This document shows, piece after piece, positions 5,103 to 55,636 of a DNA stretch of 64,000 bases. The DNA lies in the IMG/VR virus record IMGVR_UViG_3300046665_000548, positions 62,001-126,000 of that record. One strand, given 5' to 3'. Position numbers and translations under genes: made by a program. Every line of letters begins with the position of its first letter. The first letter of the stretch is position 1. The notes below the pieces were generated by a model that saw only the letters and a list, made by a program, of their open reading frames with translations, searched no databases and was not told where the DNA came from.

Positions 5103-6647
5103 ATGACTTTGCCATCCGTACGCGACCTCCTCACCATCGTTGAGAACTCCCAGCTTGATGAAGCTGGTGCTGGACCGTCTCGAATCGTCAAGCACGTTCA
5201 AGACGGTACTCCATTTTTCATGATTTCTGCTATGCGTGCAGACTTGCCGCATAGCGCGAACATGCGCCGCACTCAACTCCTCAGTGAAGAACTGGCCCAG
5301 CACGGGTTGGTCTTCATTCGGACCACAGGTGAATACCAGGAAGACGGCCAAGAGACTCCATCGCAAGAGTTGTCATTCTTCGTCATGGCTCCTGAGCATG
5401 TAAAGCTCGCCCGTTTCGTCAAGATCGGCACGACGCTCATGACCATCTTCAAACAAGATTCGATCCTTGTCGGCAATGGCGAGAACGTCTTCCTGCAATT
5501 TGCGGACGGCTCTACGCATAGCCTCGGTACGGCAGCTACCTTTGCCCCGGCCGTGCTCGCTCATCTCGGTGGCTTCAGCAAGGTCAAGGGACGCAAGTTC
5601 TCATTCACTGAACCTGATGCGGCCCCCAACGCTGTTCGCTATGGCCAGTCGCGTCCTGAGAAGAAGTTGAAACCAGAAGTCGAGCCCGAACTGACGGAGG
5701 ACGCCCCACAGGGTGCCCCCTTTCGCCTCGACCCGCTCGTAAACCCTGAAAACTACAAGATCACAGACAGCCTTGCTGATGTAAAAAATTGGCGAGCTAA
5801 GTGCTTGTATAGTGCTACGTACAATGACGCGTCAAAGAACAAGAAGACGGGTGATTGGGATACGGTTGGCTACGTGATGATCTCCAAGACTGGAGACACT
5901 ATCATTCCAATTCCTCGCGCTGATGAGCATCACATGGGCTTCGACATGCTACATGATCTCAATGATCAGCTTCGGAAGAACGCTCCGCGCGCACGTCGCG
6001 GAAAGAGTGCACCGGTTGAAGAGGTCAAGTATATCAACATTCGAGACTACTTGCCGATTTGGACTGGAGGTAACAACTACATTTACAACAAGGTAGATGT
6101 TAAGGATTACCTCGTTGTTCTTAGCAAGTACCTCAGTTATGGCGGCCCGGATGGTTTCATGAAGGGCTCAAACGACATGAGAGGCATGGTTATGAGCCTC
6201 AGTGATTTTGTTAAAAACAAGGGTCCGCACGTGATCAAGCCCGGCGAACTTGCTCCTGTTGGAAAGTCAATCTACGCTGCGCTCCAGACCGCCGCGACCG
6301 CATTGAACGCCGCTCGCGGAAATCCGCAGCGCTCCGCGATTGGAAAAGCATTTCAAGCTTCTCTGTCTCTTCTCGACTTCTTCTACAAGACGTGCGGGCA
6401 AACCAATTTGGGATGGGACGAGATCAAAGCTACGATCAAGGCCGTGTCTGCGCTCAAGAAGACGGGCGACGTTCAAAAGCTCGAAGAGATCATGTTCGGA
6501 TTTGGCAGTTTGAAGAACAAGATGCACAACGAGCTTCGTGCAACTCTCGAACGTCAGACGAAGGGCGAGAGAAGCTGGCAAGACGATGATGCCAAAGCTA
6601 CATGGGGCGATGTTGCGATGGCGGTGGACCTGTTGGGGCGCTTCTAA
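5103..6647 (+). CDS. Tagged putative virion protein with an N-terminal T3-type SAM lyase-like domain and an unknown C-terminal domain
   Basis: N-terminal tag VRDLLTIVE; ISAMRADL..ANMRR, TGEYQE..QELSFFV and FKQDSILV resemble T3 SAMase motifs; TAAATA 4 nt upstream. Confidence 0.65.
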   Translation: MTLPSVRDLLTIVENSQLDEAGAGPSRIVKHVQDGTPFFMISAMRADLPHSANMRRTQLLSEELAQHGLVFIRTTGEYQEDGQETPSQELSFFVMAPEHVKLARFVKIGTTLMTIFKQDSILVGNGENVFLQFADGSTHSLGTAATFAPAVLAHLGGFSKVKGRKFSFTEPDAAPNAVRYGQSRPEKKLKPEVEPELTEDAPQGAPFRLDPLVNPENYKITDSLADVKNWRAKCLYSATYNDASKNKKTGDWDTVGYVMISKTGDTIIPIPRADEHHMGFDMLHDLNDQLRKNAPRARRGKSAPVEEVKYINIRDYLPIWTGGNNYIYNKVDVKDYLVVLSKYLSYGGPDGFMKGSNDMRGMVMSLSDFVKNKGPHVIKPGELAPVGKSIYAALQTAATALNAARGNPQRSAIGKAFQASLSLLDFFYKTCGQTNLGWDEIKATIKAVSALKKTGDVQKLEEIMFGFGSLKNKMHNELRATLERQTKGERSWQDDDAKATWGDVAMAVDLLGRF

Positions 6648-8192: not shown

Positions 8193-8828
8193 TTACGACG
8201 TTGGCGGGAGCTTCTTTTTGGTAACGAAATATCGATACGCATCGAAGCTCTGATTCTCGCCCCAGCCATTGTTGGCAGTCAGCCACTCTTGGATAGGCAT
8301 CGAAGGGTCATAGATGCTCGCGATGTTCTTCTCGTTGAGGAAGCCCACGGTGAAGCCCTTCTGCGCCGACTCCGCCATACGGTCGATCCAGAAACGGCGA
8401 CCATCGTAGGTCTGACACTTGTCCGAGATCACGGAATCAAACTTACCGAGCAATTCGTCGTAGAAGACCCGCGTGGTGATCGAAGGCATACCGGCACCCG
8501 CACGCCGCCACAGTACGACCTGAGTAGCGCAGTTTCCGAGCTTGGGTACGACAAGCGGAGTAGCCTCGACGTAATAAACAAGCGCACGGTCGCGCAAGTT
8601 CAGCACGAAGAACTCCAAATTGACGTTCAGAGCATATGCGAACAGAAAGTTCGCGTTTTCCTCGATCACATGATAGTCGGTCTCGGCCAATCGCTGATAT
8701 TCGCTGTGGTTCACAGCCGGATCATTGAGGCCGAAATCTTCTGGCTTCGTGTGCAGGACAGGCATCTCGAACAGCGGCTCCGTCATTGCGCTCTCCACGA
8801 GGTCGATATGATTTCTTAAGGACTTCAT
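8193..8828 (-). CDS. Tagged protein with a GNAT-like fold
   Basis: N-terminal LRNHIDLVES; ISDKCQTYDGRRFW resembles motifs in 49185 and 53923. Confidence 0.6.
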   Translation of the reverse strand: MKSLRNHIDLVESAMTEPLFEMPVLHTKPEDFGLNDPAVNHSEYQRLAETDYHVIEENANFLFAYALNVNLEFFVLNLRDRALVYYVEATPLVVPKLGNCATQVVLWRRAGAGMPSITTRVFYDELLGKFDSVISDKCQTYDGRRFWIDRMAESAQKGFTVGFLNEKNIASIYDPSMPIQEWLTANNGWGENQSFDAYRYFVTKKKLPPTS

Positions 8829-10160: not shown

Positions 10161-10939
10161 TTACCCTTGCGAACCGAATCCGTCTTGCGCTTCAAGACGT
10201 ATGTCTTGCCGCCCTTCTGGAATACCCGACCATGTTCCTTATTGTCATCATCCAGATTTCCCTGATCGCTGACTTTACCGGTGGTCTTAGCACGTGAAGA
10301 CTTTGGAGAGATTTGCGGAGCACCCTCGATGTGATCGTTGAACGCGCCGTTGTCGTCAGCGACTTCGCTCTTCGGATAATCGAGGAACTTGAATAGAGGA
10401 TTGGCGGGATCGCGGCGAGCTTCGGCGCGCTCCTTCTCGACCTTTCCGAGAACACCCAGAAAGCGAGAGTTGTATTCGTTGCCATAAAGCTGGCTGGCAT
10501 CGACCTGTTCTGCTTCCTCGTAGCCGTCCTTTGTAAGAAGCGATCCCGGCTCCAGGTTGCGACGCTTTGCTTCGTCGGCCATATCGGCTTCGGCGTTCAG
10601 CTTCTCAGTCTCATTCTCTATCGGATCATTGTCGCCACGGACGACGATGAATGATTTCGGACATCCCAGGGCGAGATGAAGTTCTTCCATCATCACGTAA
10701 GGAGATGCCGGGAAAGCGAGTTCGACATCCAGTATGTAAACCTCGACGTTCGACAGCGAGGGGAAATCTAGTGGAGCCTTCTGGAAGATCGTCTTCTTCG
10801 GCGCGGAAATGTCAAGCGGCTCATATTTCAGCAGAGCTTGCTCGATCTCATCTCTGACCTCATCCGTGACTTCCACGACGGTCTTGATTCGGTAGTTGTA
10901 GGTCCGCTCGACGGCGGCGAGATATTTACGGATATCCAT
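10157..10939 (-). CDS. Late hypothetical, probable virion protein
   Basis: TAAATA upstream; N-terminus MDIRKYLAAVE. Confidence 0.7.
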   Translation of the reverse strand: MDIRKYLAAVERTYNYRIKTVVEVTDEVRDEIEQALLKYEPLDISAPKKTIFQKAPLDFPSLSNVEVYILDVELAFPASPYVMMEELHLALGCPKSFIVVRGDNDPIENETEKLNAEADMADEAKRRNLEPGSLLTKDGYEEAEQVDASQLYGNEYNSRFLGVLGKVEKERAEARRDPANPLFKFLDYPKSEVADDNGAFNDHIEGAPQISPKSSRAKTTGKVSDQGNLDDDNKEHGRVFQKGGKTYVLKRKTDSVRKGK

Positions 10940-11052
10940 GTGAGAAATACTGCCCTTGGTCAGTGTGCCTTGTATTTATGATAGGTGGGAAATCGCTTGA
11001 ACCGCTTGACAATACTCGAAATCGTGGTAGTTTTTAACAAAAGGGATTTGAA

Positions 11053-11439
11053 ATGAAAAAACTCGTCGCGGTCTACTGGGGCATTACAACCATCGGGGCA
11101 ATGATGACCGTGGCAACCGGCCTCATGGTGGGATTTGGAATGGCCGCCGTCGCCGCTCCGCATGTTGGTCTAGCGCCCTATCAGCTTCAAACGATGTTGA
11201 TTGGGGCCGTGATCCTCATCCTTGCAGCTATCCCTTTCATGTTTACCCGAACGGCAAGATTGATTCTTGTCGCATCCGGCGTGTATTGCACCGGAGTCGC
11301 GGGATTGATAGCAACTGGCCTTGCTGGTTTTATTTCGCCGTTTGTCGGGGTATCGTCGGATATTCTCCAGACCATGGTCGTAGTCAGTGTAATCCTGACT
11401 ACGCCGTCGAGGCTTTTGAAACTGTACGAGGGAGAATAA
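11053..11439 (+). CDS. Membrane protein with about 4 TM segments
   Basis: Hydrophobic segments; CTTGAC promoter upstream. Confidence 0.65.
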   Translation: MKKLVAVYWGITTIGAMMTVATGLMVGFGMAAVAAPHVGLAPYQLQTMLIGAVILILAAIPFMFTRTARLILVASGVYCTGVAGLIATGLAGFISPFVGVSSDILQTMVVVSVILTTPSRLLKLYEGE

Positions 11440-11443
11440 AGAG

Positions 11444-11707
11444 ATGCGCCTGGGTTTCGTTGCACTATTTTGTTGTTTGGTATCCGGTCAAGTGCTGGCA
11501 GGAGAGAGCGATTGCGTCCAGTTGCGAGATTCCGATCAGCGGAACCTCTGTATGGCAAAGAATCGCCGCAGCGAGACCTACTGCACCGCCATCAACAACG
11601 AAGATCAGCGCCGCTACTGCCGCGCGGTGGTGAGCCATCGGGAAGCTGATTGCGTCGCAATTTCTGACCCCGAACTCCGAACCTATTGCCGGGGGACGAC
11701 TCGGTGA
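11444..11707 (+). CDS. Secreted Cys-rich repeat protein
   Basis: Signal peptide plus three C-x2-(I/L)-x3-(D/E)-x-R-x2-C repeats. Confidence 0.65.
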   Translation: MRLGFVALFCCLVSGQVLAGESDCVQLRDSDQRNLCMAKNRRSETYCTAINNEDQRRYCRAVVSHREADCVAISDPELRTYCRGTTR

Positions 11708-12156
11708 CTGACGCCGATCTGCTGAAACAGTTCGAGGAAGAGTTACCGGAGTTGCATCGTTCGGGCTCTCTCAAGGAAGTGCGAGAGTGGGTCTTGGATC
11801 ATGCCGAGGCCCTGATTCTGCGCAACAGCAAACCCGACATGCCATCGGCTTTTCCGGCGCAGTTCTTCGCGATGGATTTTTCGCACCATCGATACGAAAA
11901 AAATATCTACGACCGTAAAGAGGACGACTATCGATCCGGTCTGGTGTGCCATTGCGTCATGAAGATAGTAGACTTCAATAATGGTTTTCGGATTCTCGAT
12001 GGAACTGGTCTTGTTGTTCAGAACGGCAAGACATCAGCAAATGGTCTTAAACTCCACTGCGATATTCATTTCTACGAAGAAGATTGGCCTACTCTATTTG
12101 TAATGGCCAAGATGACAAGTACGGATGGAAAGTTGGCGTTCTTCCTCGCCGCTTAG
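11704..12156 (+). CDS. Hypothetical protein
   Basis: GTGA-coupled ORF. Confidence 0.55.
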   Translation: MTDADLLKQFEEELPELHRSGSLKEVREWVLDHAEALILRNSKPDMPSAFPAQFFAMDFSHHRYEKNIYDRKEDDYRSGLVCHCVMKIVDFNNGFRILDGTGLVVQNGKTSANGLKLHCDIHFYEEDWPTLFVMAKMTSTDGKLAFFLAA

Positions 12157-12216
12157 ATATTGCTGAGAGCAATCGACAGCAGGTATAAAGTCCTCTATCT
12201 CTTTTTAAGGATTTCA

Positions 12217-12753
12217 ATGTCATCTTTCATTTCGACCGTTATGGTTGTTCTAGGTCTTTCACAGCCAGCGCCCGCCGTTGAGACACACAAGGGCGTCCGC
12301 GCCCCCGCCGTCCAGTTCAATAAGTATCCCAAGCGGGAAGATCATTATCCTGGTGGCTTCTCTTGGCCGGTTTGTGCTGGCAAGAAAGAGAAGATGTCAG
12401 AGTGTGTTACTGATGGCGATACGGTTCGCATCAAGTTTAAGGCGTATCGTCTTATCGACCTCGACACGCCAGAGACCAAGGCGTCGAACCGCTGCTCCAC
12501 TCCTGAAAAAGAAGCGGCAGCCAAAGCTCTCGGCGCGAAGGCCAAGCAAACCGTTGTGACGATGTTATCTACGGCGAAAGATATCGTTGTTACGGTATAC
12601 ATCGATCCGCTGACAAAGGACCCGGTGACCGACAAGTACGGTCGGACCCTCTCAAATATTTCAGCAGATGGTAAGGATGTGGCCTCTGTACTGATCAGCA
12701 GCGGTCTAGGCCATCACTATGATGGCGGAACAAAGACTAAGTGGTGCGACTGA
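12217..12753 (+). CDS. Thermonuclease (SNase-family) with a signal peptide
   Basis: VTDGDTV, RLIDLDTPE, DKYGRTL, LISSGLG motifs. Confidence 0.85.
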   Translation: MSSFISTVMVVLGLSQPAPAVETHKGVRAPAVQFNKYPKREDHYPGGFSWPVCAGKKEKMSECVTDGDTVRIKFKAYRLIDLDTPETKASNRCSTPEKEAAAKALGAKAKQTVVTMLSTAKDIVVTVYIDPLTKDPVTDKYGRTLSNISADGKDVASVLISSGLGHHYDGGTKTKWCD

Positions 12754-46323: not shown

Positions 46324-46441
46324 GGTTTAACGGTATATCGACAGTCCTGAGCCGTAAACCAAAAAATATTCGCTTTCTTTGCATTTTTCAGTTGTAACGG
46401 TTTGGGGAACTGTGTATAAATACGTTCTCTTGATTGGTTAC

Positions 46442-46516
46442 GCGAATGTAATTCAGTGGTAGAATGCCTCGTTGCCAACGAGGTCGCCGTGGGTTCGAGC
46501 CCCACCGTTCGCTCCA
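46442..46516 (+). tRNA. tRNA-Gly(GCC)
   Basis: Cloverleaf; anticodon arm CCTCG-TTGCCAA-CGAGG; GGTTCGA; encoded CCA. Confidence 0.92.
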
Positions 46517-46533
46517 GTCAGAAAGTTGTTTGT

Positions 46534-46610
46534 CGCGGGGTGGAGCAGCCCGGTAGCTCGTTAGGCTCATAACCTAAAGGTCGGTGGTTCAAATCCATCT
46601 CCCGCAACCA
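46534..46610 (+). tRNA. Initiator tRNA-fMet(CAT)
   Basis: CGCGGGG start with C1:A72 mismatch; TTAGG-CTCATAA-CCTAA; CCA end. Confidence 0.92.
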
Positions 46611-46655
46611 AACATTGAAAGAAATTGCCGACCTCAAAGGGTTGGCCAAGAGTGA

Positions 46656-46732
46656 CGCGGGATGGAGCAGTCAGGTAGCTCGTCGGGTTCATATCCCGGA
46701 GGTCGGTGGATCGAAGCCATCTCCCGCAACCA
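46656..46732 (+). tRNA. Second, variant initiator-type tRNA-Met(CAT)
   Basis: CGCGGGA start; TCGGG-TTCATAT-CCCGG; T-loop ATCGAAG; CCA end. Confidence 0.85.
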
Positions 46733-46766
46733 TTAAACGGTCTCCTTGTCCCGATAGACAGGAAAT

Positions 46767-46842
46767 GGGGCCTTAGCTCAGTTGAGAGAGCGATTCGCTG
46801 GCAGTGAATAGGTCGTCAGTTTGATCCTGACAGGCTCCACCA
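46767..46842 (+). tRNA. tRNA-Ala(GGC)
   Basis: G3:U70 pair; loop CTGGCAG; atypical T-loop TTTGATC; CCA end. Confidence 0.85.
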
Positions 46843-46850
46843 CATAGTTC

Positions 46851-46925
46851 GGGCTAGTAGTTCAGCGGGAGAACGTTGCCTTTGCAAGGCAAATGTCGGG
46901 GGTTCAATTCCCTCCTGGTCCACCA
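46851..46925 (+). tRNA. tRNA-Ala(TGC)
   Basis: G3:U70 pair; TTGCC-TTTGCAA-GGCAA; CCA end. Confidence 0.88.
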
Positions 46926-47118
46926 CACTGCGCCTGTTTGACCTTCGGGAAGACAGGCTTTTATTACGGATGAGACCGGTTTACACCTACGGGGCCAAAC
47001 CGGGCCAATCTCACCGTAAGGCCCCTGGGGCTTAGTCCAGGCGCGGCCGGAGCGAAATCCGGTAGAGGGCTGCACGGGACGCCGGATAGTCTGCGGAGGG
47101 GTGGGAACCCCTTCCAAT

Positions 47119-47194
47119 GCGAACGTAGCTCAGTTGGTAGAGCGTCTGATTTCCAATCAGAATGTCGTGAGTTCGAATCTCATCGTTCGCTCCA
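47119..47194 (+). tRNA. tRNA-Gly(TCC)
   Basis: TCTGA-TTTCCAA-TCAGA; GTTCGAAT; CCA end. Confidence 0.92.
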
Positions 47195-47734
47195 TTTTTT
47201 CTTCCATATCTCAATGTAATTCCTAACCTTCTCTTCAACGAGAGGGCGGAATTTGCTGTGCCAATACTGATGGTGCGTAGGGCACATAGGTATTAGGTTC
47301 GCTGGATCATTGTTCTGATGATTTTCATCAAGATGATGCACGGAAACGATATTTCTCTCATCACACACTACGCATTGTTTTTCGTGATGCCCGAAGCAGA
47401 TAGTGGTGTATTTTGTGATCTCGATATTTCTTCTGGATGCCCAGTCGAGTCCTGATCCTCTGTGATTTGAGCAACTGCGGCTACAAAAATACTTTTCCTT
47501 TAGAGGATACTGTTTTTCTCTTTCCCTTATCGAAAAATCCTTCGCGCAAGCATGGCACGCTACTGTGTAGGTTTTCATATCCCCAAGCTGTTTGCTGATG
47601 TATCGCCGTTGGGCATCCGCAAGTGCTTGAGTATCGTTCCTCTTTGGATTATGAGAACACCAACGAGAATGATTGGCTTTCTGACTGGTCGAGGAATATT
47701 CGAAGGTTTCGTCGCAATGAGCACATTTCCACAT
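47180..47734 (-). CDS. HNH homing endonuclease with Zn-finger modules
   Basis: CxxC motifs, FCSRSC, VHHLDENHQNNDPANLIPMCPTHH; TAAATA 4 nt upstream. Confidence 0.88.
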   Translation of the reverse strand: MWKCAHCDETFEYSSTSQKANHSRWCSHNPKRNDTQALADAQRRYISKQLGDMKTYTVACHACAKDFSIREREKQYPLKEKYFCSRSCSNHRGSGLDWASRRNIEITKYTTICFGHHEKQCVVCDERNIVSVHHLDENHQNNDPANLIPMCPTHHQYWHSKFRPLVEEKVRNYIEIWKKKWSER

Positions 47735-47836: not shown

Positions 47837-48061
47837 ATGCGTACTGATCTCACCGAAAAAGAGCACAAGTTGCTTCACCTGCTTTGGAATAATGGCCTTA
47901 AGGGTTCTATGTGTTGGATTCGTCGGGATGAAGATGAGGACACGAATTCCAGTTTAACATCTCTCATTGAGCGTGGATTAGTGGCGCGAAAAGATAACGG
48001 CTGGTTCATCTATATTACTGAAGACGGCGAGTTTTTGATTCGCTTCTACGGGAAACCCTGA
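47837..48061 (+). CDS. MRTDL winged-helix paralog 1
   Basis: MRTDLT..E..LL...SLIERGLV...ITEDG...R.YGKP. Confidence 0.75.
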   Translation: MRTDLTEKEHKLLHLLWNNGLKGSMCWIRRDEDEDTNSSLTSLIERGLVARKDNGWFIYITEDGEFLIRFYGKP

Positions 48062-48273
48062 TGCGCACTGATCTAACCGAGATGGAGCACAAAATGCTCT
48101 ACGACATCTCAAATGACACAGGGTATTGTTGGATTAATCGGTATGAGCATCCGAAAGCCAATGCTTCAATGGCATCTCTTATCGAACGTGGCTTAGTGAG
48201 AAAAGAAAAAAGCTTTTTCGTCAAGATCACTGAGGACGGCGCGCTTTTGGCACGTCTCTATGGGAAGCCCTAA
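48061..48273 (+). CDS. MRTDL winged-helix paralog 2
   Basis: Same pattern; TGATG coupling. Confidence 0.75.
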   Translation: MRTDLTEMEHKMLYDISNDTGYCWINRYEHPKANASMASLIERGLVRKEKSFFVKITEDGALLARLYGKP

Positions 48274-48518
48274 TGCGCACTGATCTGAACAACAACGAGC
48301 TTTGGTTGCTTGAATTTATTAATGACTGCGCGAGTGGCCGCTGTCACCCTCCTCGCGCTTACACGATTCGTGAGGTAGTGATTCTTCAAAAAGCACCTCT
48401 TTTAAGGTTGCTCGCGGATGGCATGGTAATAAAACGACCAGGAGAGAATCCCGCTATCGTGGACATTTACCCCACTGACGATGGCTTATTCATGCTTAGG
48501 CTTCATGGGGTGATCTGA
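48273..48518 (+). CDS. MRTDL winged-helix paralog 3 (divergent)
   Basis: Same termini; TAATG coupling. Confidence 0.7.
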   Translation: MRTDLNNNELWLLEFINDCASGRCHPPRAYTIREVVILQKAPLLRLLADGMVIKRPGENPAIVDIYPTDDGLFMLRLHGVI

Positions 48519-48739
48519 TGCGAACTGATCTCACCGATGATGAGCACTGGTATCTTATCTACGTCGATTTTCATTCTGATCAAGGAAGAAAGTTTATCGG
48601 GTGGGTTTCTTCTTTCCACAAATCCGTAGACGCTTTGGTTGAGCGCGGCCTGATCGAGAAAACGGAAGACAAAAACAGTGTTTGGATTAAATCCACTCCA
48701 GATGGCGTACTCTTGGCCCGACTCTACGGAGAGCCGTAA
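48518..48739 (+). CDS. MRTDL winged-helix paralog 4
   Basis: Same pattern. Confidence 0.75.
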   Translation: MRTDLTDDEHWYLIYVDFHSDQGRKFIGWVSSFHKSVDALVERGLIEKTEDKNSVWIKSTPDGVLLARLYGEP

Positions 48740-48951
48740 TGCGCACTGATCTCACCCACCCGGAGCACATGCTACTCCAGGAAATATCGGATCATAGTGG
48801 TTTTGCTTGGCTTTCTCCGGATGATGACAAGGAAACGAATTCTTGCATAGCATCTCTCATTGATCGTGGATTGGTGAGGATACAAAATGTCTGGTTCATC
48901 TATATTACTGATGATGGCGAGCTTTTGCTTCGTATGTACGGAGAGCCCTGA
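48739..48951 (+). CDS. MRTDL winged-helix paralog 5
   Basis: Same pattern. Confidence 0.75.
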   Translation: MRTDLTHPEHMLLQEISDHSGFAWLSPDDDKETNSCIASLIDRGLVRIQNVWFIYITDDGELLLRMYGEP

Positions 48952-49169
48952 TGCGCACTGATCTCACCGAAATGGAGCACAAGTTGCTTCACCACATATC
49001 GCGAGTCGATAAGCAAGGTTTCGCTTGGCTTTCTCGTGACGAAGATGAGGTCACGAATTCTTGTCTGTCATCTCTCGTTGATCGTGGATTAGTGACGAGA
49101 GAAAATGGCTGGTTCATCTCCATTACCGAGGACGGCAAGCTTTTGATTCGTATGTACGGGAAGCCGTAG
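48951..49169 (+). CDS. MRTDL winged-helix paralog 6
   Basis: Same pattern; close to paralog 1. Confidence 0.75.
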   Translation: MRTDLTEMEHKLLHHISRVDKQGFAWLSRDEDEVTNSCLSSLVDRGLVTRENGWFISITEDGKLLIRMYGKP

Positions 49170-49173
49170 CGTC

Positions 49174-49179
49174 TAAATA
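49174..49179 (+). promoter_or_regulatory. Late promoter box TAAATA (representative)
   Basis: Also at 5093, 15864, 19325, 20327, 32890, 42292, 46417 and 53450, and on the minus strand before 30492, 41196, 47734, 58861, 25153 and 19209; resembles the T4 gp55 late promoter TATAAATA. Confidence 0.75.
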
Positions 49180-49184
49180 CTCGC

Positions 49185-49877
49185 ATGAACATGCGCGACA
49201 TCATCACTCTCATTGAAACTCAAGAGCTAGACGAGATTGAACTCGGTGGCCAGTTGGACAGTTCGTTTGTTGATGATCTCGACAAGAAAGATTTGAGCAG
49301 CGATCAGCTTGATCTTTTCGAACCAACCACGACGGGTCAGCCGCGTCTTCCCGCCAATATGAAGTTGATCGGCCGTACGGGTGCGTATTACGTGGCGCAA
49401 CGCACCGGGCCGCTTCCTGGGCAATCTCAATCCAAAGACGAACATCTATACGTGTTCATCAAAGACAATAAAGCTGCGGGCTATATCTGCCTGTATCCGT
49501 GGAGCGGCGATCACGTCAATTATCCGCATCAAGTGAGCTACCAGCCTGATCTGCACGGCAAGGGTCTTCGCACGGCGGCTGTAATGGTTATGCCGGATTT
49601 TCGCGGACAGAACCTTGGCCCGACTATGTACAAATGGGTTTTGGAGAACGTTTGCGACTACATCATTGCCGATGCCACTCACACCCAGGGCGGCGCTGCA
49701 CTCTGGAAGAGAATGCGGGCGATGAAAAATGTGTTTGCGGTAGAGATTTGGAATGCTGACAAATACGAGACGCAACCACGTTGGCACAGGCATGTGTATG
49801 ATCGTGACCACTACATTCCGTGGATCACATTAAGAGGGCGCGAACATAACATTCGGACCGGGGAGGACGACGAATGA
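49185..49877 (+). CDS. Tagged protein with a GNAT acetyltransferase-like domain
   Basis: MNMRDIITLIE tag; VMPDFRGQNLGPTMY acetyl-CoA motif A. Confidence 0.75.
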   Translation: MNMRDIITLIETQELDEIELGGQLDSSFVDDLDKKDLSSDQLDLFEPTTTGQPRLPANMKLIGRTGAYYVAQRTGPLPGQSQSKDEHLYVFIKDNKAAGYICLYPWSGDHVNYPHQVSYQPDLHGKGLRTAAVMVMPDFRGQNLGPTMYKWVLENVCDYIIADATHTQGGAALWKRMRAMKNVFAVEIWNADKYETQPRWHRHVYDRDHYIPWITLRGREHNIRTGEDDE

Positions 49878-50365
49878 ATATGCGCGATCTTATGACGCTC
49901 GTTGAGGCGCGCGGAGGAACGAAGCTTTATCACGGTTCAAAGAAATCGTTTCCTGTTGGGTTTGTTCTTGAGCCTCAGAAAGATGGCTATGTTCACGCCA
50001 ACAGTGGCGATGAGTTTGATGCGCAAATCAAGATCACGGAGCAGTTGCTCGAAAAATTTCGACCATCAGATCAATTATCCAGATACGAGTCTGTTTTCGT
50101 AACAACAACCCCCGCTACTATTGAGTATGCTGGCGGCAGTACAAACCACGTTTATGTGGTCGAGCCACTTGGACCAATCTTTTTCGGCAATCTCTACTGG
50201 TACAGTCAGATCGAGAATGCAGCATTTGATATCGATGACTATGATCCAGATGAATTGCGTTCTTGGGCGCAAAACTACTGGGCTGCTAAACCATCTGGTC
50301 AATCAGAAACGTATGAGTATCGAACCAATAAGGCGCGGATCGTCAAAGAGGTAAAATGGCGATGA
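49874..50365 (+). CDS. Tagged protein with an ADP-ribosyltransferase (Arr-like) domain
   Basis: MNMRDLMTLVE tag; LYHGS..FPVG..L, VFVT, VYVVEPLG, terminal YEY. Confidence 0.65.
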   Translation: MNMRDLMTLVEARGGTKLYHGSKKSFPVGFVLEPQKDGYVHANSGDEFDAQIKITEQLLEKFRPSDQLSRYESVFVTTTPATIEYAGGSTNHVYVVEPLGPIFFGNLYWYSQIENAAFDIDDYDPDELRSWAQNYWAAKPSGQSETYEYRTNKARIVKEVKWR

Positions 50366-50673
50366 ACATGCGCGACCTGATCTCTATCTGTGAAGCTGAA
50401 GACCTCAAAGCGTTGATGGCCAGCATTCGCGAACGTAACAATGCGGCTGAGGTTATGCTGCGGGATGCACTGTCTAACTCCTCACGACTGGCGCTTGTTC
50501 ACCCCGAGGGCAAGAAGATTTTGGTCAGCAAGTCTCTCGACCCCGACTACAAGTGGCGTCTCACTTACTTTGACGACGCTGGTCCATCGGGCCACGTCGA
50601 ATATCGTGATATCACGCGCGAGATGTCCAACGAAATTGCGATGGCTCTCAAGAACGGGTACGTGCGATCATGA
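50362..50673 (+). CDS. Tagged protein with an unknown domain
   Basis: MNMRDLISICE tag; WRLTYFDDAGPSGH. Confidence 0.7.
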   Translation: MNMRDLISICEAEDLKALMASIRERNNAAEVMLRDALSNSSRLALVHPEGKKILVSKSLDPDYKWRLTYFDDAGPSGHVEYRDITREMSNEIAMALKNGYVRS

Positions 50674-51038
50674 AGATGCGCGATCTTATCGACCTTACCG
50701 AGAGTGCAATTACAGCGACATCCATGGATGGACGCAAAGTTATTATTCTAAAGAACCCTTCTCCGGTTGTTCTGCTTGATAGGTTGAGGCGAACCAGGTC
50801 GTTGCGTGGAATTGTAGTTGGCCAAGATTTGTTTTGGGCCAACAGTTACTCTTTGATTCATGTTCAAATAGGCAAAGCCGTTGGTGCTGCTGATGGTTAC
50901 GGGGATGCCCGGCTCGACCTTAAATACAAAGACGGCGGCGCGAAGCTTTTCATTCTACCGCATAATAAATCGTTCGATGAAATTTCTGCACTGCCTCAGG
51001 TACAGAGATTACAGAACTACATTGCGGAGAAGACTTGA
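50670..51038 (+). CDS. Tagged protein with a KNP-RG-W-H domain
   Basis: MKMRDLIDLTE tag; ILKNPS..LRGIV..LFW....LIH. Confidence 0.7.
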   Translation: MKMRDLIDLTESAITATSMDGRKVIILKNPSPVVLLDRLRRTRSLRGIVVGQDLFWANSYSLIHVQIGKAVGAADGYGDARLDLKYKDGGAKLFILPHNKSFDEISALPQVQRLQNYIAEKT

Positions 51039-51670
51039 TGAATATGCGCGATCTCATGAAGCTTTGTGAGGCTCGGTATAGCCCACCCAAGCCACTCGAT
51101 GGCGGCCCGAAGATCGATGATAACAATCAGTACGGTTCATCGGCTCGTCGCCCAATGTTGCTCAGTCTTCCCGCTAGCCAACCGCAAAGTGCCTACCTTT
51201 TTCACGGTGCTCCTCTCGATCATCTCGTGTCTATTTTGCGAGACAATTGTATCAGCACCGGCATCAATTGGCGCGGTGAAGGCGAGCGCGTAGCATGCAC
51301 CCGCAATTGGAAGATAGCGCTAGGCTTTGGAAACCAAGGCGACTTTGATATGTTTCCGGCATTCCTGGTGCTGGACTGGGCTAAGCTAGCAAAGAAGTAT
51401 CACATCGTGTCTTACGAAGACTGTGACATGCATGGAGAGGCATGGAAAACTAGCGAACAGGAAGAAGCTGTCTGCGGAGAGATCACGCCTCTCAGTTCTT
51501 ATTTGATTTCGATCAATGTTGCGCCGGAAGTTCTTCTGGCTGCAATGCAGGATCGCGAATATGCTGATTGGGTTGTTGGCGAAAAGAGTTTCTTCTCGTC
51601 TCCTAGATATTGGTTCGCGGCTCTTCAGAGATTGTCTCAATCTCCAAAACTGAACGCTTGGAGACCCTGA
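51038..51670 (+). CDS. Tagged protein with an ADP-ribosyltransferase-like domain
   Basis: MNMRDLMKLCE tag; YLFHG, VACTRN..IA..F, LVLD, EQEE. Confidence 0.6.
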   Translation: MNMRDLMKLCEARYSPPKPLDGGPKIDDNNQYGSSARRPMLLSLPASQPQSAYLFHGAPLDHLVSILRDNCISTGINWRGEGERVACTRNWKIALGFGNQGDFDMFPAFLVLDWAKLAKKYHIVSYEDCDMHGEAWKTSEQEEAVCGEITPLSSYLISINVAPEVLLAAMQDREYADWVVGEKSFFSSPRYWFAALQRLSQSPKLNAWRP

Positions 51671-52407
51671 TGGATATGCGCGATCTCATGATCCTATTCG
51701 AGGGCAAAGCAGTAAAGGTTGAGATCGATGATCAACTGCCATTCCGGGTATACATCAATCCAACTCCGCAGCAGATGATGTCTGGTCGTCAGCGCGGTTT
51801 GATCGACACTGAAGGCAACCTGTATGTTTGGGACGCTTATCAGGCGACTCACGACAGTGTTGCGAACGAATTGGGTATCACCTGGGAAAGCGCATTGCTT
51901 CTTGAACCGGACAAGATTGAGATCGTTGGCGGCGACAAAAATCTTGAAAACTGGGTTCATATCAATCGAGCATACGGTGGCAAAATGCCTTTTGTTGAAA
52001 ACTCGCAGCAATATCCGGCCGAGACGTTCATGCATGAAGCCGAAGCCAGCTTGGCCCCCATGTCCGGAAACGTCTCCGCAATCCTAATACCTCAAGACGG
52101 CGATACCGTTGAGATTAATCACATCAGCGCGATGCCGATGCGCTCGGGTTGGGGCACAAAAGCAATGAATATTATCGTTTCGTTGGCAGACCGATGCGGC
52201 GTGACCCTAACGCTTGAGGTCGATAATGACTCGGACGATTGGGGCCATGACGACGAAGACGAGAGCCAACCCACTGACGATACAGCATCAATTCCGTCCA
52301 ACGATGATTTGATGGGTTGGTATGGCGGCTATGGATTTTCTGTTGCTGACGGTCTTTCCTCGCGCATTCAGATGGTAAGAAAGCCGAATACGGCTTTACC
52401 AATTTAA
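51670..52407 (+). CDS. Tagged two-domain protein: KNP-RG-WDA-H domain plus GNAT-like domain
   Basis: MDMRDLMILFE tag; INPT..RGLID..VWDAYQATH; RSGWGTKAM..IV.LADRCGVTLTL..LMGWYGGYGF. Confidence 0.7.
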   Translation: MDMRDLMILFEGKAVKVEIDDQLPFRVYINPTPQQMMSGRQRGLIDTEGNLYVWDAYQATHDSVANELGITWESALLLEPDKIEIVGGDKNLENWVHINRAYGGKMPFVENSQQYPAETFMHEAEASLAPMSGNVSAILIPQDGDTVEINHISAMPMRSGWGTKAMNIIVSLADRCGVTLTLEVDNDSDDWGHDDEDESQPTDDTASIPSNDDLMGWYGGYGFSVADGLSSRIQMVRKPNTALPI

Positions 52408-52458
52408 CTTCCCGGTGTAGTGCTTACCGCTTCTCTCAACCCGAGGAGGCTCTACTAC

Positions 52459-53385
52459 ATGAAGTCTAGCAGTTTAGCGTTGATAGACCACACGGCGGTG
52501 ACTGCATTGCAGAATCTGCCAAAGACCCGGAAGATTACTCGGCAAGTCGCCGGGTTCGATGTCGAGGACGTAGTACCGTATACGTCTGATGATATCACAC
52601 AGGGTTTCAAACAAGACGCCGACGCTTTGCGGGCTTCGCTGTCCAGTGCGGGCATCACGCCTCTGGCGGTTATTCCCACGGTCTGGTGGGATCGGATTGT
52701 TACCCGATCCAAGCTGGTCGATTTCGAGCCGTCTGGGAAAGGAACGGTCGGCGTCCATCTCTCCGAATATGCGACGGCAATCAAACGCGGATGGTATAAG
52801 ACGATCTCGTTTTTCGCCACATGGTTTACGTTGGCGTTCGCCGTATCCGCTATTCTCTATCACACCGCTCCGATCAACATGTATGGCGTCGTGTTGCTAC
52901 CTTTGATCCCGACCGTGCTCGCGACTGCGGCGCTGGCCAATTGGTGGGAATCGGCGTGGGCATGGATCGTATCCAGTGTCTACACGATGACGCGCGGCGG
53001 CAACAAACGGCTTCTTGTCGAAATATTGAGAAAGAGCAAGGACGGCTACAGCGCACGGCATGTTGGCGTGACTCTTCCTCGGCCTCCTTCTAACGTCATG
53101 GACATCTTGCTCAAAGCTGATCGTGCACAGATGAGAATGCGCGTGGCGGCAGTTCCGGAAGCGGTTCAGTTGGCACAGAGCCCGCGTCAGCTTATCGCAA
53201 ACGAGGTCAGAGACCAGTGGTCGCAGGAAGCTCTGGAGCGTCGCGAAGCGGCTCGCGTGCGTGCGCTTGATCCGATCATCTACGTCATGAAGGGTTCGGC
53301 GGTGGCCGTGATCGCTCAGTTCGGTGACTTTCCCATCGAGCAGCGCATCGTGGAAGAGGTTGTTCAGAGCCGTCCTGTCGCCTAA
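52459..53385 (+). CDS. Membrane protein (2 TM)
   Basis: GAGGAGG RBS; C-terminal DPIIY...AVIAQFGDFP.E. Confidence 0.7.
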   Translation: MKSSSLALIDHTAVTALQNLPKTRKITRQVAGFDVEDVVPYTSDDITQGFKQDADALRASLSSAGITPLAVIPTVWWDRIVTRSKLVDFEPSGKGTVGVHLSEYATAIKRGWYKTISFFATWFTLAFAVSAILYHTAPINMYGVVLLPLIPTVLATAALANWWESAWAWIVSSVYTMTRGGNKRLLVEILRKSKDGYSARHVGVTLPRPPSNVMDILLKADRAQMRMRVAAVPEAVQLAQSPRQLIANEVRDQWSQEALERREAARVRALDPIIYVMKGSAVAVIAQFGDFPIEQRIVEEVVQSRPVA

Positions 53386-53406
53386 CTACCGAACGATACG
53401 AACACG

Positions 53407-53440
53407 AAAGGGCTGGCCGAAAGGCTGGCCCTTTTTCTTT
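53407..53440 (+). terminator. Intrinsic terminator
   Basis: AAAGGGCTGGCC-GAAA-GGCTGGCCCTTTTT. Confidence 0.75.
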
Positions 53441-53461
53441 TGGCAGTCATAAATACTCACC

Positions 53462-53923
53462 ATGAATATGCGCCATTTCATTTCGCTTTGCGAAAGCCAC
53501 TTGTCAGATGCTTTTGAGGGGATCGACAAGCCAACATTAGTTCTCCCGGCCGGGACCGTTCTTTTTCACGGCACGGATCGCCCGGCCAGTGAGTGGGACC
53601 CGCGTGTTGACCCGATTTGGGGACCGGCATGGTTTGGAGCCGACTTTGAGGTGGCTAACAGTTACGCCAAATTTCAGCGCAGTGGCGAGAATGGCGAGCC
53701 GTACATCATTCAGTATAGCACCAACCGTAGCCTCAAGCTTCTAGAGGCTTCTGCGCCAGAAATTGCGGCGGTGATGGATGAATTGTACGACACCTACATG
53801 ACGGATGAAATCGCGGGTGCCATGCACGATCTTGGCTTCGAAGGCTGGCACATCAAAGATACCGAGGTCATGATCGCGGACGGCAACGCGCTTGATTTCG
53901 TCAAGATATTGAAGGTGCAATAA
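53462..53923 (+). CDS. Tagged protein with an ADP-ribosyltransferase-like domain
   Basis: MNMRHFISLCE tag; LPAGTVLFHGT, AWFG....A..YA, GFEGW...TEVMI. Confidence 0.65.
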   Translation: MNMRHFISLCESHLSDAFEGIDKPTLVLPAGTVLFHGTDRPASEWDPRVDPIWGPAWFGADFEVANSYAKFQRSGENGEPYIIQYSTNRSLKLLEASAPEIAAVMDELYDTYMTDEIAGAMHDLGFEGWHIKDTEVMIADGNALDFVKILKVQ

Positions 53924-54525
53924 TGGATATGCGCTCTCTCATTAGTCTTTGTGAAGACTACTCCGGACCTCCTTTCAAACCACGCAGCAAGTCACCAAAG
54001 TCATTCACGGTTCAGGACAACCTTGTGATTGTCCAGGACAGTGACAAAACCATTTGGGCCTACAACGGAACGCCACGTTCGAACTGGCATCCTGAGGCAA
54101 ATGGCAAAAAGATCGGCGGCGTGCTGCTCCAAGACCATGCTTCCCACGGTGAGGATGCGTGGTCAGTTTATAAGTCGGGCGTCGATAAGCCTTATCAGCG
54201 CAAGGGAGTTGCAAGAGCGCTCTACACGCAAGCCGAACAGAATGCTGCCGCTAAGGGCAAGTCGTTCGTACCATCGGGCTCCGTGTCGGATGATGCATTC
54301 CATTTCTGGAGCAATTTTAGGCCAGAGCGTATTGCAAAGGATGGGCGCAACTGGGCTCAGCATTACGTTGGCAAGCAGGTTCACTTTCAGGATCGCGACT
54401 GGGTAATTACTAGCGCAGCAAGAAGCGACGGAAGATACTTTATGGCGAAACTAGTGAACGGAGACAACACTACGGGTATCCCTCGCCAGATCGTCATCGA
54501 CCAGCTTGGGGATTTCTACAAATGA
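53923..54525 (+). CDS. Tagged protein with a GNAT acetyltransferase-like domain
   Basis: MDMRSLISLCE tag; VDKPYQRKGVARALY. Confidence 0.75.
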   Translation: MDMRSLISLCEDYSGPPFKPRSKSPKSFTVQDNLVIVQDSDKTIWAYNGTPRSNWHPEANGKKIGGVLLQDHASHGEDAWSVYKSGVDKPYQRKGVARALYTQAEQNAAAKGKSFVPSGSVSDDAFHFWSNFRPERIAKDGRNWAQHYVGKQVHFQDRDWVITSAARSDGRYFMAKLVNGDNTTGIPRQIVIDQLGDFYK

Positions 54526-55046
54526 ATATGCGCTACTTGATGAATCTCTGCGAATCTCAAGACCCAGAGATCGAAAAACTTTTAAAGATGGACCCTTTCA
54601 GCAAGGGCAGTGCGTACACTCCGCACTCTCGCGAGAAGCAACTTAAGGCGAAAGAGGCAAGTGCTGCTACGAGAGAATTGAAGGCGATCATCAAGGACGC
54701 AAAACAGTCCGGCGTAGTCATTGAACTTTATCCGTCTGTCCAGACGTACAGCAGCGACATTCCTATGAAATGGATTGAGAACAACTCAGTCAAAGGTACC
54801 GCCGCCAAGTATATGCAGATGATCTGCGATCTCGCAGATCGATACGGACTAGAATTGAACCTGCGCGCGCAGTTGGGAGAGCCGAAACTAGTCGAATACT
54901 ACAAACGCTTCGGCTTCGTTATTTCGCCAGATCAAGAAGCGGCAGTCAAACTTGGTCTATACGGACGAGATGACATCCCAGGAAACAAACTAATCGGAAC
55001 GTCGCCATTTATGTGGCGTCTTCCAAGAACGGAGCAGACCTTATGA
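54522..55046 (+). CDS. Tagged protein with a GNAT-like domain
   Basis: MNMRYLMNLCE tag; KGTAAKYMQMICDLADRYGLELNL..LVEYYKRFGF. Confidence 0.7.
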   Translation: MNMRYLMNLCESQDPEIEKLLKMDPFSKGSAYTPHSREKQLKAKEASAATRELKAIIKDAKQSGVVIELYPSVQTYSSDIPMKWIENNSVKGTAAKYMQMICDLADRYGLELNLRAQLGEPKLVEYYKRFGFVISPDQEAAVKLGLYGRDDIPGNKLIGTSPFMWRLPRTEQTL

Positions 55047-55636
55047 ACATGCGAGACCTGATGAGGCTGTGTGAAGATGCAGCAACGCCATTCCAACCAG
55101 AAGCGCCCGCACCTCAAGACGCCGCGCCAGAACAAACTCCGTTCGAGAAGTGGTTTGCTGGTTCAAAGATTGTCGATGCTTCCGGCAATCCTCTCAAAGT
55201 CTATCATGGAACGTCGAAGGATCAGAATTTTCGGGCGTTCAAGATGAACAAGAACGGTATTTGGTTCACAGCCGATCCCGCCGAAGCGTCTCAATATTCG
55301 GTAGAAAACGACAGCATGGGTCACAAGTACGACAATGGCAAGTTCAATCCCGTGCACACGGCGTCCCGTGTTATTCCCTGCTATGTGCGCGCACTCAAGG
55401 TGATGTACTACGACGTATGGCCGGATCAAATTCGTCTGGCTGATAATTACAAGCGCGCTCAAGGTATCGTGTTCGATCAACTTAGATCGCAGGGTTACGA
55501 TGCCGTAGTTACTGGTGGACTCGTAGTCGCCATTGGAAGCCCGAATCAGATCAAGTCGGCAATCGGAAATCAAAAATTCGATCCATCGAAGAAGAACATC
55601 GATGAGGATGACGACGATCCCAGCACCAAATCCTAA
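55043..55636 (+). CDS. Tagged protein with an ART-PolyVal-like ADP-ribosyltransferase domain
   Basis: MNMRDLMRLCE tag; WFAGSKIVD..GNPLKVYHGT, GIWFT..P..ASQYS, GYDAV, NQIKSAIGN. Confidence 0.75.
   Translation: MNMRDLMRLCEDAATPFQPEAPAPQDAAPEQTPFEKWFAGSKIVDASGNPLKVYHGTSKDQNFRAFKMNKNGIWFTADPAEASQYSVENDSMGHKYDNGKFNPVHTASRVIPCYVRALKVMYYDVWPDQIRLADNYKRAQGIVFDQLRSQGYDAVVTGGLVVAIGSPNQIKSAIGNQKFDPSKKNIDEDDDDPSTKS

Follow-up and report, generated by a model that had tools for sequence, protein, structure and literature searches.

Ten plus-strand genes at positions 49185-55636 of a 64,000-nt stretch of virus DNA encode small proteins that all begin with variants of the same 11-residue leader peptide. 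The stretch, called the window here, comprises bases 62001-126000 of virus record IMGVR_UViG_3300046665_000548, which is 607,744 bp long and rated complete (positions below are those of the window, unless the genome or a contig is named, and array genes are referred to by their first position). Four of the ten proteins are ADP-ribosyltransferase (ART)-like, two are GNAT acetyltransferases, and four are of unknown function. We lean towards the view that the leader is a capsid-targeting sequence (CTS) in the style of phage T4, and that the proteins of the array would be packaged in the head of the phage and enter the host by injection. Packaging, cleavage, injection, targets and activity are all inferred from sequence.

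The leader peptide and its distribution

All ten array genes open with M-(N/D/K)-M-R-x-(L/I/F)-(M/I)-x-(L/I)-x-E, at the very N-terminus of the protein, and the consensus of the leader is M-N-M-R-D-L-(M/I)-x-L-(C/I)-E. A strict form of this pattern, written as a regular expression, is present in 19 open reading frames (ORFs) of the genome, and about ten tagged genes lie outside the array. A position-specific scoring matrix adds one or two ORFs and looser forms of the pattern add several. The overall number of tagged genes is about 20-26. The corresponding degenerate DNA pattern matches the genome 18 times, compared to 0 matches for the reversed control. Among the 19 strict leaders, position 9 is Leu in 18 cases and Ile in one, position 11 is always Glu, and position 12, the first residue after the leader, is Ser, Ala or Gly in 13. 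The third codon positions of the leader vary freely while the amino acids are kept, and the DNA upstream is not conserved. Selection thus acts on the leader peptide. In view of the synonymous variation, we also reject the idea that the leader is DNA that was recently duplicated.

The cargo behind the leader is diverse. In BLASTP comparisons, the mature parts of the tagged proteins are mostly unrelated, and the array proteins are single-domain proteins of 103-245 amino acids (aa), or about 9-28 kDa. When ten tagged proteins encoded outside the window were scanned with Pfam, the only matches were to DUF7178 and to an R2K ATP-grasp domain. The R2K-clade ATP-grasp protein (genome 15188-15958, plus strand, locus L070; Pfam E-value 7.9e-21) carries the short leader form MRDLIAFLE. 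Looser forms are found on a 514-aa S-adenosylmethionine methyltransferase-like protein (5103-6647, plus strand), which starts MTLPSVRDLLTIVE, and on the product of a 208-211-aa ORF adjoining a NUDIX gene (8193-8828, minus strand), which starts MKSLRNHIDLVE. At least six further genes, four of them ART-PolyVal-like, begin with a shorter variant, M-R-Y-x-E-(I/L)-(I/L)-x-E.

Two other metagenomic phage contigs, L073 and L074, hold similar arrays of tagged genes. The 32-kb contig L073 contains the closest homolog of the array protein 51038, inside a run of at least ten tagged genes. The leader on this contig follows the pattern x-I-R-(H/R)-(Y/F)-I-x-(L/I)-(V/I)-E, and the cargo is partly shared with the window and partly different. 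L074 has five genes with such a leader. The homologs of 53462 and 49874 in other phages have different N-termini, which likewise end in hydrophobic-x-E; on the contig of one 53462 homolog (P0005), no leader common to the neighbouring genes was found. In IMG/VR, the exact leader DNA pattern has 37 matches, which is estimated to be about chance level. True leaders account for two of these, both on one 785-864-aa protein, for which Pfam was uninformative. On L073, a leaderless gene for a 660-aa PAS/HWE histidine kinase (10740-12722) stands among the tagged genes, and a NADAR-domain gene is located upstream on this contig.

The hexamer TAAATA is the core of the T4 late promoter, which has the consensus TATAAATA. 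In the genome, 77 of 210 TAAATA hexamers are followed, 3-9 nt downstream, by the ATG start of an ORF that is 60 aa or longer. Such hexamers precede both transcription units of the array (49174-49179, 5 nt 5' of the ATG of the first gene, and 53450-53455, 6 nt 5' of the ATG of the second unit, both on the plus strand), several virion genes, and the tRNA cluster, where the hexamer at 46417-46422 is part of a full TATAAATA, 20 nt upstream of the cluster. This distribution fits T4-like late transcription, and the placement of the hexamers suggests T4-late-like promoters and near-leaderless mRNAs. The short distance between TAAATA and many start codons suggests very short 5' untranslated regions, and speaks for the idea that what is conserved at the 5' end of the coding sequences is an element acting as RNA, such as a signal for translation initiation on these mRNAs, and not a functional peptide. 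We regard this as very improbable. The third codon positions are free while the amino acids are kept, the leader is also present on operon-internal genes with overlapping stop and start codons and a Shine-Dalgarno-like sequence of their own, and in other phages the pattern of the peptide is retained with other residues.

Proposed capsid targeting, its alternatives and known delivery systems

If the leader is a capsid-targeting tag, the two transcription units of the array would give rise to small effectors, each made with the 11-residue leader at its N-terminus. Like the T4 CTS, the leader would attach its protein to the prohead's scaffolding core. A prohead protease of the gp21 type (Peptidase_S77) would then remove it after L-x-E, and the mature protein would stay in the head and be injected together with the DNA. 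In the newly infected cell, the ARTs would, in the manner of T4 Alt, act early in infection and consume host nicotinamide adenine dinucleotide (NAD+) in the modification of proteins or nucleic acids of the host.

The T4 CTS, MKTYQEFIAE, has 10 residues, ends in I-A-E, is removed there by one gp21 cut, and suffices to package foreign proteins (PMC8442874, PMC9026906). Alt, the packaged ART of T4, is cut at ITE-6 (PMC5694885). The leader described here resembles a T4-type CTS in that it is a short N-terminal peptide shared by unrelated proteins, with an ending like a prohead protease site. The genome encodes a Peptidase_S77/gp21-family protease (PF03420, 95 bits, E-value 1.3e-27; PHROG head maturation protease phrog_207, 3e-56) at genome 369555-370202 on the minus strand, and the gene adjoins one for a coiled-coil, scaffold-like protein. 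The T4-type (Gp23) major capsid protein contains LFE-6, LCE-18 and LNE-54 just before the Gp23 domain. In the model of 51038, the leader forms a helix (residues 3-14) that is joined to the ART domain by a linker of about 35 residues with low confidence. When the S77 protease and the first 45 residues of 51038 were predicted as a complex, the score was 0.00, which is evidence neither for nor against binding.

We favour capsid targeting because the leader is shared by ten consecutive genes and about ten elsewhere, on mostly unrelated cargo, and because its L-x-E ending resembles the T4 sites in a genome that encodes a gp21-family protease. The separate leader helix modelled for 51038 and the similar arrays on the two other contigs point in the same direction. 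So do the cargo types, which match those of virion-delivered polyvalent proteins (PMC5512222, PMC9503650), the late-promoter-like TAAATA shared with virion genes, and the hydrophobic-x-E endings of the otherwise different N-termini of 53462 and 49874 homologs.

Several observations weigh against this view. The leader has no sequence homology to the T4 CTS, and resembles it only in length, position, and the hydrophobic-x-E end. Many 51038 homologs that stand alone have the N-terminal helix immediately next to the ART domain, so that in these proteins the helix could belong to the fold. The ART status of 49874 is weak and the catalytic competence of 55043 appears doubtful from its sequence, as discussed below. 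The median isoelectric point of the mature cargo is 5.8, so that it is not basic, unlike the T4 internal proteins. Finally, the degenerate leader DNA pattern matches the genome of Sinorhizobium phage Phosso only once and that of Agrobacterium phage Atu_ph07 never, although these nearest cultured relatives both have T4-type heads. The last two points would be easier to understand if the leader were a tag with another role, such as timed degradation by a protease of the host or phage, binding of a shared chaperone or partner, or localization to a membrane or compartment, and if the proteins acted only inside the cell that produces them. It is also true that the data show a conserved portable peptide, and nothing on its destination. 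Nevertheless, we consider such a role rather unlikely. The invariant L-x-E followed by a small residue corresponds to the specificity of the encoded S77 protease family, the cargo types are known from virion-delivered polyvalent proteins, and the late-promoter-like motif is common to the array and virion genes.

With respect to the organization of the cargo, the array can be compared with IPI, IPII and IPIII, the internal proteins of T4, together with Alt. In both cases, a short N-terminal peptide with an (L/I)-x-E end is attached to unrelated small proteins, a gp21-family prohead protease is encoded, the genes lie together at a variable locus (in this genome next to a tRNA cluster), and there is ART cargo, as exemplified by Alt. 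In contrast to T4 with its 3-4 tagged genes, there are about 20-26 here, with enzymatic, non-basic cargo, in a 608-kb phage that is known from sequence alone. The array also resembles the polyvalent proteins (Iyer et al. 2017), with which it shares ART-PolyVal, a second ART family and GNAT domains, with NUDIX nearby; some of these giant proteins contain domains that are direct homologs of 55043 and 51038. In the array, however, the domains are separate and each has its own leader, whereas polyvalent proteins combine them in one multi-domain polypeptide. The ejection-protein paralogs of SPN3US and phiKZ likewise have conserved N-terminal propeptides that are cut after Glu by a prohead protease, and SPN3US gp53 and gp54 have an identical 15-residue N-terminus (PMC5694885). 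In these phages the protease belongs to the S80 family, the sites are A/S-x-E, and the propeptide links paralogs, whereas here the protease is of the S77 family, the sites are L-x-E, and the cargo is unrelated.

It is established that T-even phages have CTS-tagged hypervariable internal proteins (PMC9026906), and that ARTs are expanded in jumbo phages and can be packaged in heads (PMC9503650, PMC5512222). Bacillus phage G, for example, has at least 10 ARTs (PMC9503650). In our literature search, we came across no report of a phage of the 600-kb class that has a large array, conserved within a clade, with solo polyvalent-protein domains as cargo. We tentatively suggest that a clade of very large phages may load at least two dozen small enzymes (ARTs, GNATs, an ATP-grasp enzyme and many proteins of unknown function) for injection by means of a portable 9-11-residue tag, as an 'unbundled' counterpart of polyvalent proteins, with a consensus that drifts between phages. 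This goes further than the assignment of the leader itself, and we would not be surprised to see it fail.

Should the leader be a capsid-targeting tag, the injected 'first-strike' proteome of this uncultivated phage, about 20-26 proteins and most of them without known function, could be recognized from its sequence. Early host takeover or counter-defence would in that case be candidate roles of the four ART-fold proteins, including the Tpt1/DarT-like one. The combination of leader, L-x-E and S77 protease would provide a simple rule to find injected effectors in metagenomic phages, and the pair of tag and protease could be reused to package chosen cargo. Moreover, T4 internal proteins and polyvalent proteins, two delivery strategies, would become linked.

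The ART-like proteins of the array

An earlier note on this DNA had described the products of 49874, 51038, 53462 and 55043 as divergent ART-like paralogs with a common (Y/F)HG strand. The four ORFs are present and start at the positions given there, and a [YF]HG[TSA] strand is found close to the N-terminus of every product (LYHGS in 49874, LFHGA in 51038, LFHGT in 53462, and VYHGT in 55043). Among 1,246 genomic ORFs of at least 100 aa, [LVIM][YF]HG[TSA] occurs 15 times, 12 of them in the first 75 residues. This N-terminal clustering is more than expected by chance, and thus the motif marks a real class of proteins. Nine further ORFs with an N-terminal [YF]HG[TS] strand start at genome positions 6005, 142742(-), 188012(-), 224055(-), 280150, 341698, 346486, 501747(-) and 561186, which raises the number of ART-like genes in the genome to about 13. 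ART-PolyVal matches outside the array were found for 280150 (1.3e-11) and 346486 (2e-6). The 399-aa protein encoded at genome 341698-342897 (plus strand, locus L056) combines an FHGS ART-like N-terminus with DUF6513 (1.4e-20) and an adenylate-kinase domain (6e-10).

The suggestion that the four proteins are paralogs does not hold. No pairwise similarity among them was detected by BLASTP or phmmer, and a comparison of the 51038 and 55043 family profiles gave an hhalign probability of 8%, which is no match. In the absence of detectable sequence similarity, the proteins represent four ART families (tentatively so for 49874), in agreement with the further proposal of different ART subfamilies. A phmmer search of PDB sequences with the four proteins returned only noise (FliL, collagenase).

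The 210-aa product of 51038 (51038-51670, plus strand) looks like an orphan in a word-based search, but a full HMMER search yielded 93 relatives, a family for which there is no Pfam model. The AlphaFold2 (AF2) model, built from a 44-sequence alignment, has a predicted local distance difference test (pLDDT) score of 88, and the top 50 PDB matches listed for it are all ART-fold proteins. According to this model, 51038 has the ART fold, as anticipated. The best structural match is to Tpt1/KptA (Z-score 10.5, root-mean-square deviation 2.0, 93 residues), and DarT is matched with a Z-score of 8.3 over 132 residues. These closest neighbours are nucleic-acid-directed ARTs, which is in line with the nucleic-acid targets that the earlier note had considered, and the 51038 type appears likeliest of the four to act on nucleic acid. 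Like Tpt1/KptA and DarT, 51038 has the NAD-binding ART fold and the [YF]HG motif. It differs from them in that it lacks Pfam-level membership, and its family has an invariant E-x-E of its own as well as an Arg that is nearly invariant. The lobe with which Tpt1 binds RNA, at the N-terminus, is missing, because only chain residues 83-177 align. Within the family, H56, E140 and E142 are invariant, and R89 and D113 nearly so. Some homologs are domains of proteins of 1186-4167 aa that also contain ART-PolyVal, GNAT or NUDIX domains, and in two of these large proteins the stretch that matches 51038 also matches Tox-ART-HYD1 (2.6e-7) or PTS_2-RNA (1.3e-4).

The 197-aa product of 55043 (55043-55636, plus strand) is an ART-PolyVal protein (PF18760, 53.5 bits compared to a cut-off of 31.2, E-value 5.7e-14, profile positions 1-137 of 140). 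ART-PolyVal has been described as an H-Y-D family with Asp as the catalytic residue, the site being composed of His in strand 1, an aromatic residue in strand 2, and Asp or Glu in strand 5 (PMC5512222). In 55043, the His is present (VYHGT) and Trp occupies the aromatic position in strand 2, but the acidic residue of strand 5 is absent. In an alignment of 12 ART-PolyVal sequences, Asp or Glu is found at the start of the last strand in 7, where 55043 reads G-G-L-V-V-A-I-G. The earlier suggestion that 55043 possibly lacks the catalytic Glu is thus correct in that the acidic residue is gone, but the residue to be expected is the Asp/Glu of H-Y-D, and not a canonical Glu. The strand-5 acid is also missing from the two closest relatives, a domain of a 3085-aa polyvalent protein (L005, 54% identity over the matched segment) and a protein of a 45-kb podovirus, as well as from the paralog at genome 346486. 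Given that the closest relatives share the loss, it is a conserved subfamily state, and not a one-off decay.

It is possible, although on balance not what we expect, that 55043 is a catalytically dead binder of NAD+ or ADP-ribose, acting as a decoy or sponge and not as a transferase. The missing strand-5 residue, present in 7 of the 12 ART-PolyVal members, is consistent with this, as is the fact that the closest relative, the domain of the 3085-aa protein (L005 4415-13672), also carries Thr at the position of the motif-1 His (V-V-Y-T-G-T). On the other hand, 55043 conserves the His, a G(Y/F)D motif and a P-N-Q-I-K-S tail. Its subclade keeps an acidic motif of its own, V-E-N-D, and the motif A-D-N-Y-K-R-A-Q in three phages at 37-48% identity. 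This indicates that some function is under purifying selection, possibly catalysis in which the acidic residue has been relocated.

The two remaining proteins are more remote. The 153-aa product of 53462 (53462-53923, plus strand) matches ART-PolyVal in Pfam with 13.1 bits, under the cut-off, and one of its three homologs (P0003) has a sub-threshold match to the same part of the profile. An alignment of the 53462 family against the ART-PolyVal alignment gave an hhalign probability of 91% and an E-value of 1e-6. In the ESM Atlas, a search by features led to ART-PolyVal clusters (0.93), and a search by structure to RES NAD+ phosphorylases, with template-modelling (TM) scores of 0.67-0.69. H36 and E135 are retained in 53462 and invariant in 4 homologs. 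We regard 53462 as a probable distant ART-PolyVal relative.

The 163-aa product of 49874 (49874-50365, plus strand) is only tentatively ART-like, of a DUF2441/Arr-like type. Its Pfam match to Arr-ms (PF12120) is weak (E-value 0.064, 13.9 bits compared to a cut-off of 25), and its single homolog is likewise under the cut-off (0.009, 16.6 bits). A genome-wide search for Arr-ms found none. Structural neighbours in the Atlas are a toxin-antitoxin protein (TM 0.73), DUF2441 (TM 0.70) and an Arr-ms cluster (TM 0.47), and the AF2 model from the 2-sequence alignment has a pLDDT of 36. A tblastn search of phages with 49874 found nothing, and the profile of the protein and its homolog gave only noise against the PDB. 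A related-locus search of IMG/VR found no relatives of the 49874, 53462 and 51038 families.

Layout of the array and genomic setting

The only breaks in the run of tagged genes are a gene that has no leader and a strong terminator. The first unit begins with the 230-aa GNAT acetyltransferase (49185-49877, leader MNMRDIITLIE; Pfam Acetyltransf_1, E-value 2.7e-5, over the cut-off), which is 33% identical to the leader-tagged L073_7670. It is followed by 49874 and by two genes of unknown function. The first of these (50362-50673, 103 aa, leader MNMRDLISICE) has no family match in profile scans, and the second (50670-51038, 122 aa, leader MKMRDLIDLTE) is weakly similar in BLASTP to two tagged genes, at genome 144176 and 142228. 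Downstream of 51038 lies a gene for a 245-aa protein of unknown function (51670-52407, leader MDMRDLMILFE), whose N-terminal domain is 40% identical to the tagged gene at genome 142228. The unit ends with the leaderless gene (52420-53385), which encodes a 321-aa protein with a hydrophobic central segment and no Pfam match. An intrinsic-terminator-like hairpin with a 13-bp stem and a T run (53406-53435) then splits the array into two units. The second unit contains 53462, a 200-aa GNAT acetyltransferase (53923-54525, leader MDMRSLISLCE; Acetyltransf_1, 3.8e-6), a 174-aa protein of unknown function (54522-55046, leader MNMRYLMNLCE), and 55043. The 174-aa protein shares 30% identity with the C-terminal portion of L073_12758, a tagged gene whose product has only faint GNAT matches. 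All these features are on the plus strand.

The DNA of the flagged region has no match in 50,697 phage records. Among the genes are those for a large terminase of the T4 type, for a tail sheath and for a baseplate hub. Judged by the terminase, Phosso (61% identity, 469 kb) and Atu_ph07 (53%, 490 kb) are the nearest cultured relatives, followed by the Pseudomonas PA5oct group (50% identity).

Both NUDIX genes that the earlier note had placed in the window (8880 and 38873) were confirmed by a domain scan. The suggestion in that note that they could handle ADP-ribose products has a parallel in other phages, where NUDIX domains are fused with ART domains homologous to those of the window. The tRNA cluster upstream of the array consists of six genes (Gly, Met x2, Ala x2, Gly; 46442-47194). 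Its last tRNA is overlapped by the 3' end of an HNH endonuclease gene on the opposite strand (47180-47734, minus strand). Directly upstream of the array, at 47837-49169 on the plus strand, there are six tandem genes for small paralogs of 70-85 aa. No Pfam match was found for the three that were scanned. The paralogs start with MRTDL(T/N), end with (L/M)(Y/H)G, and their genes mostly have overlapping stop and start codons.

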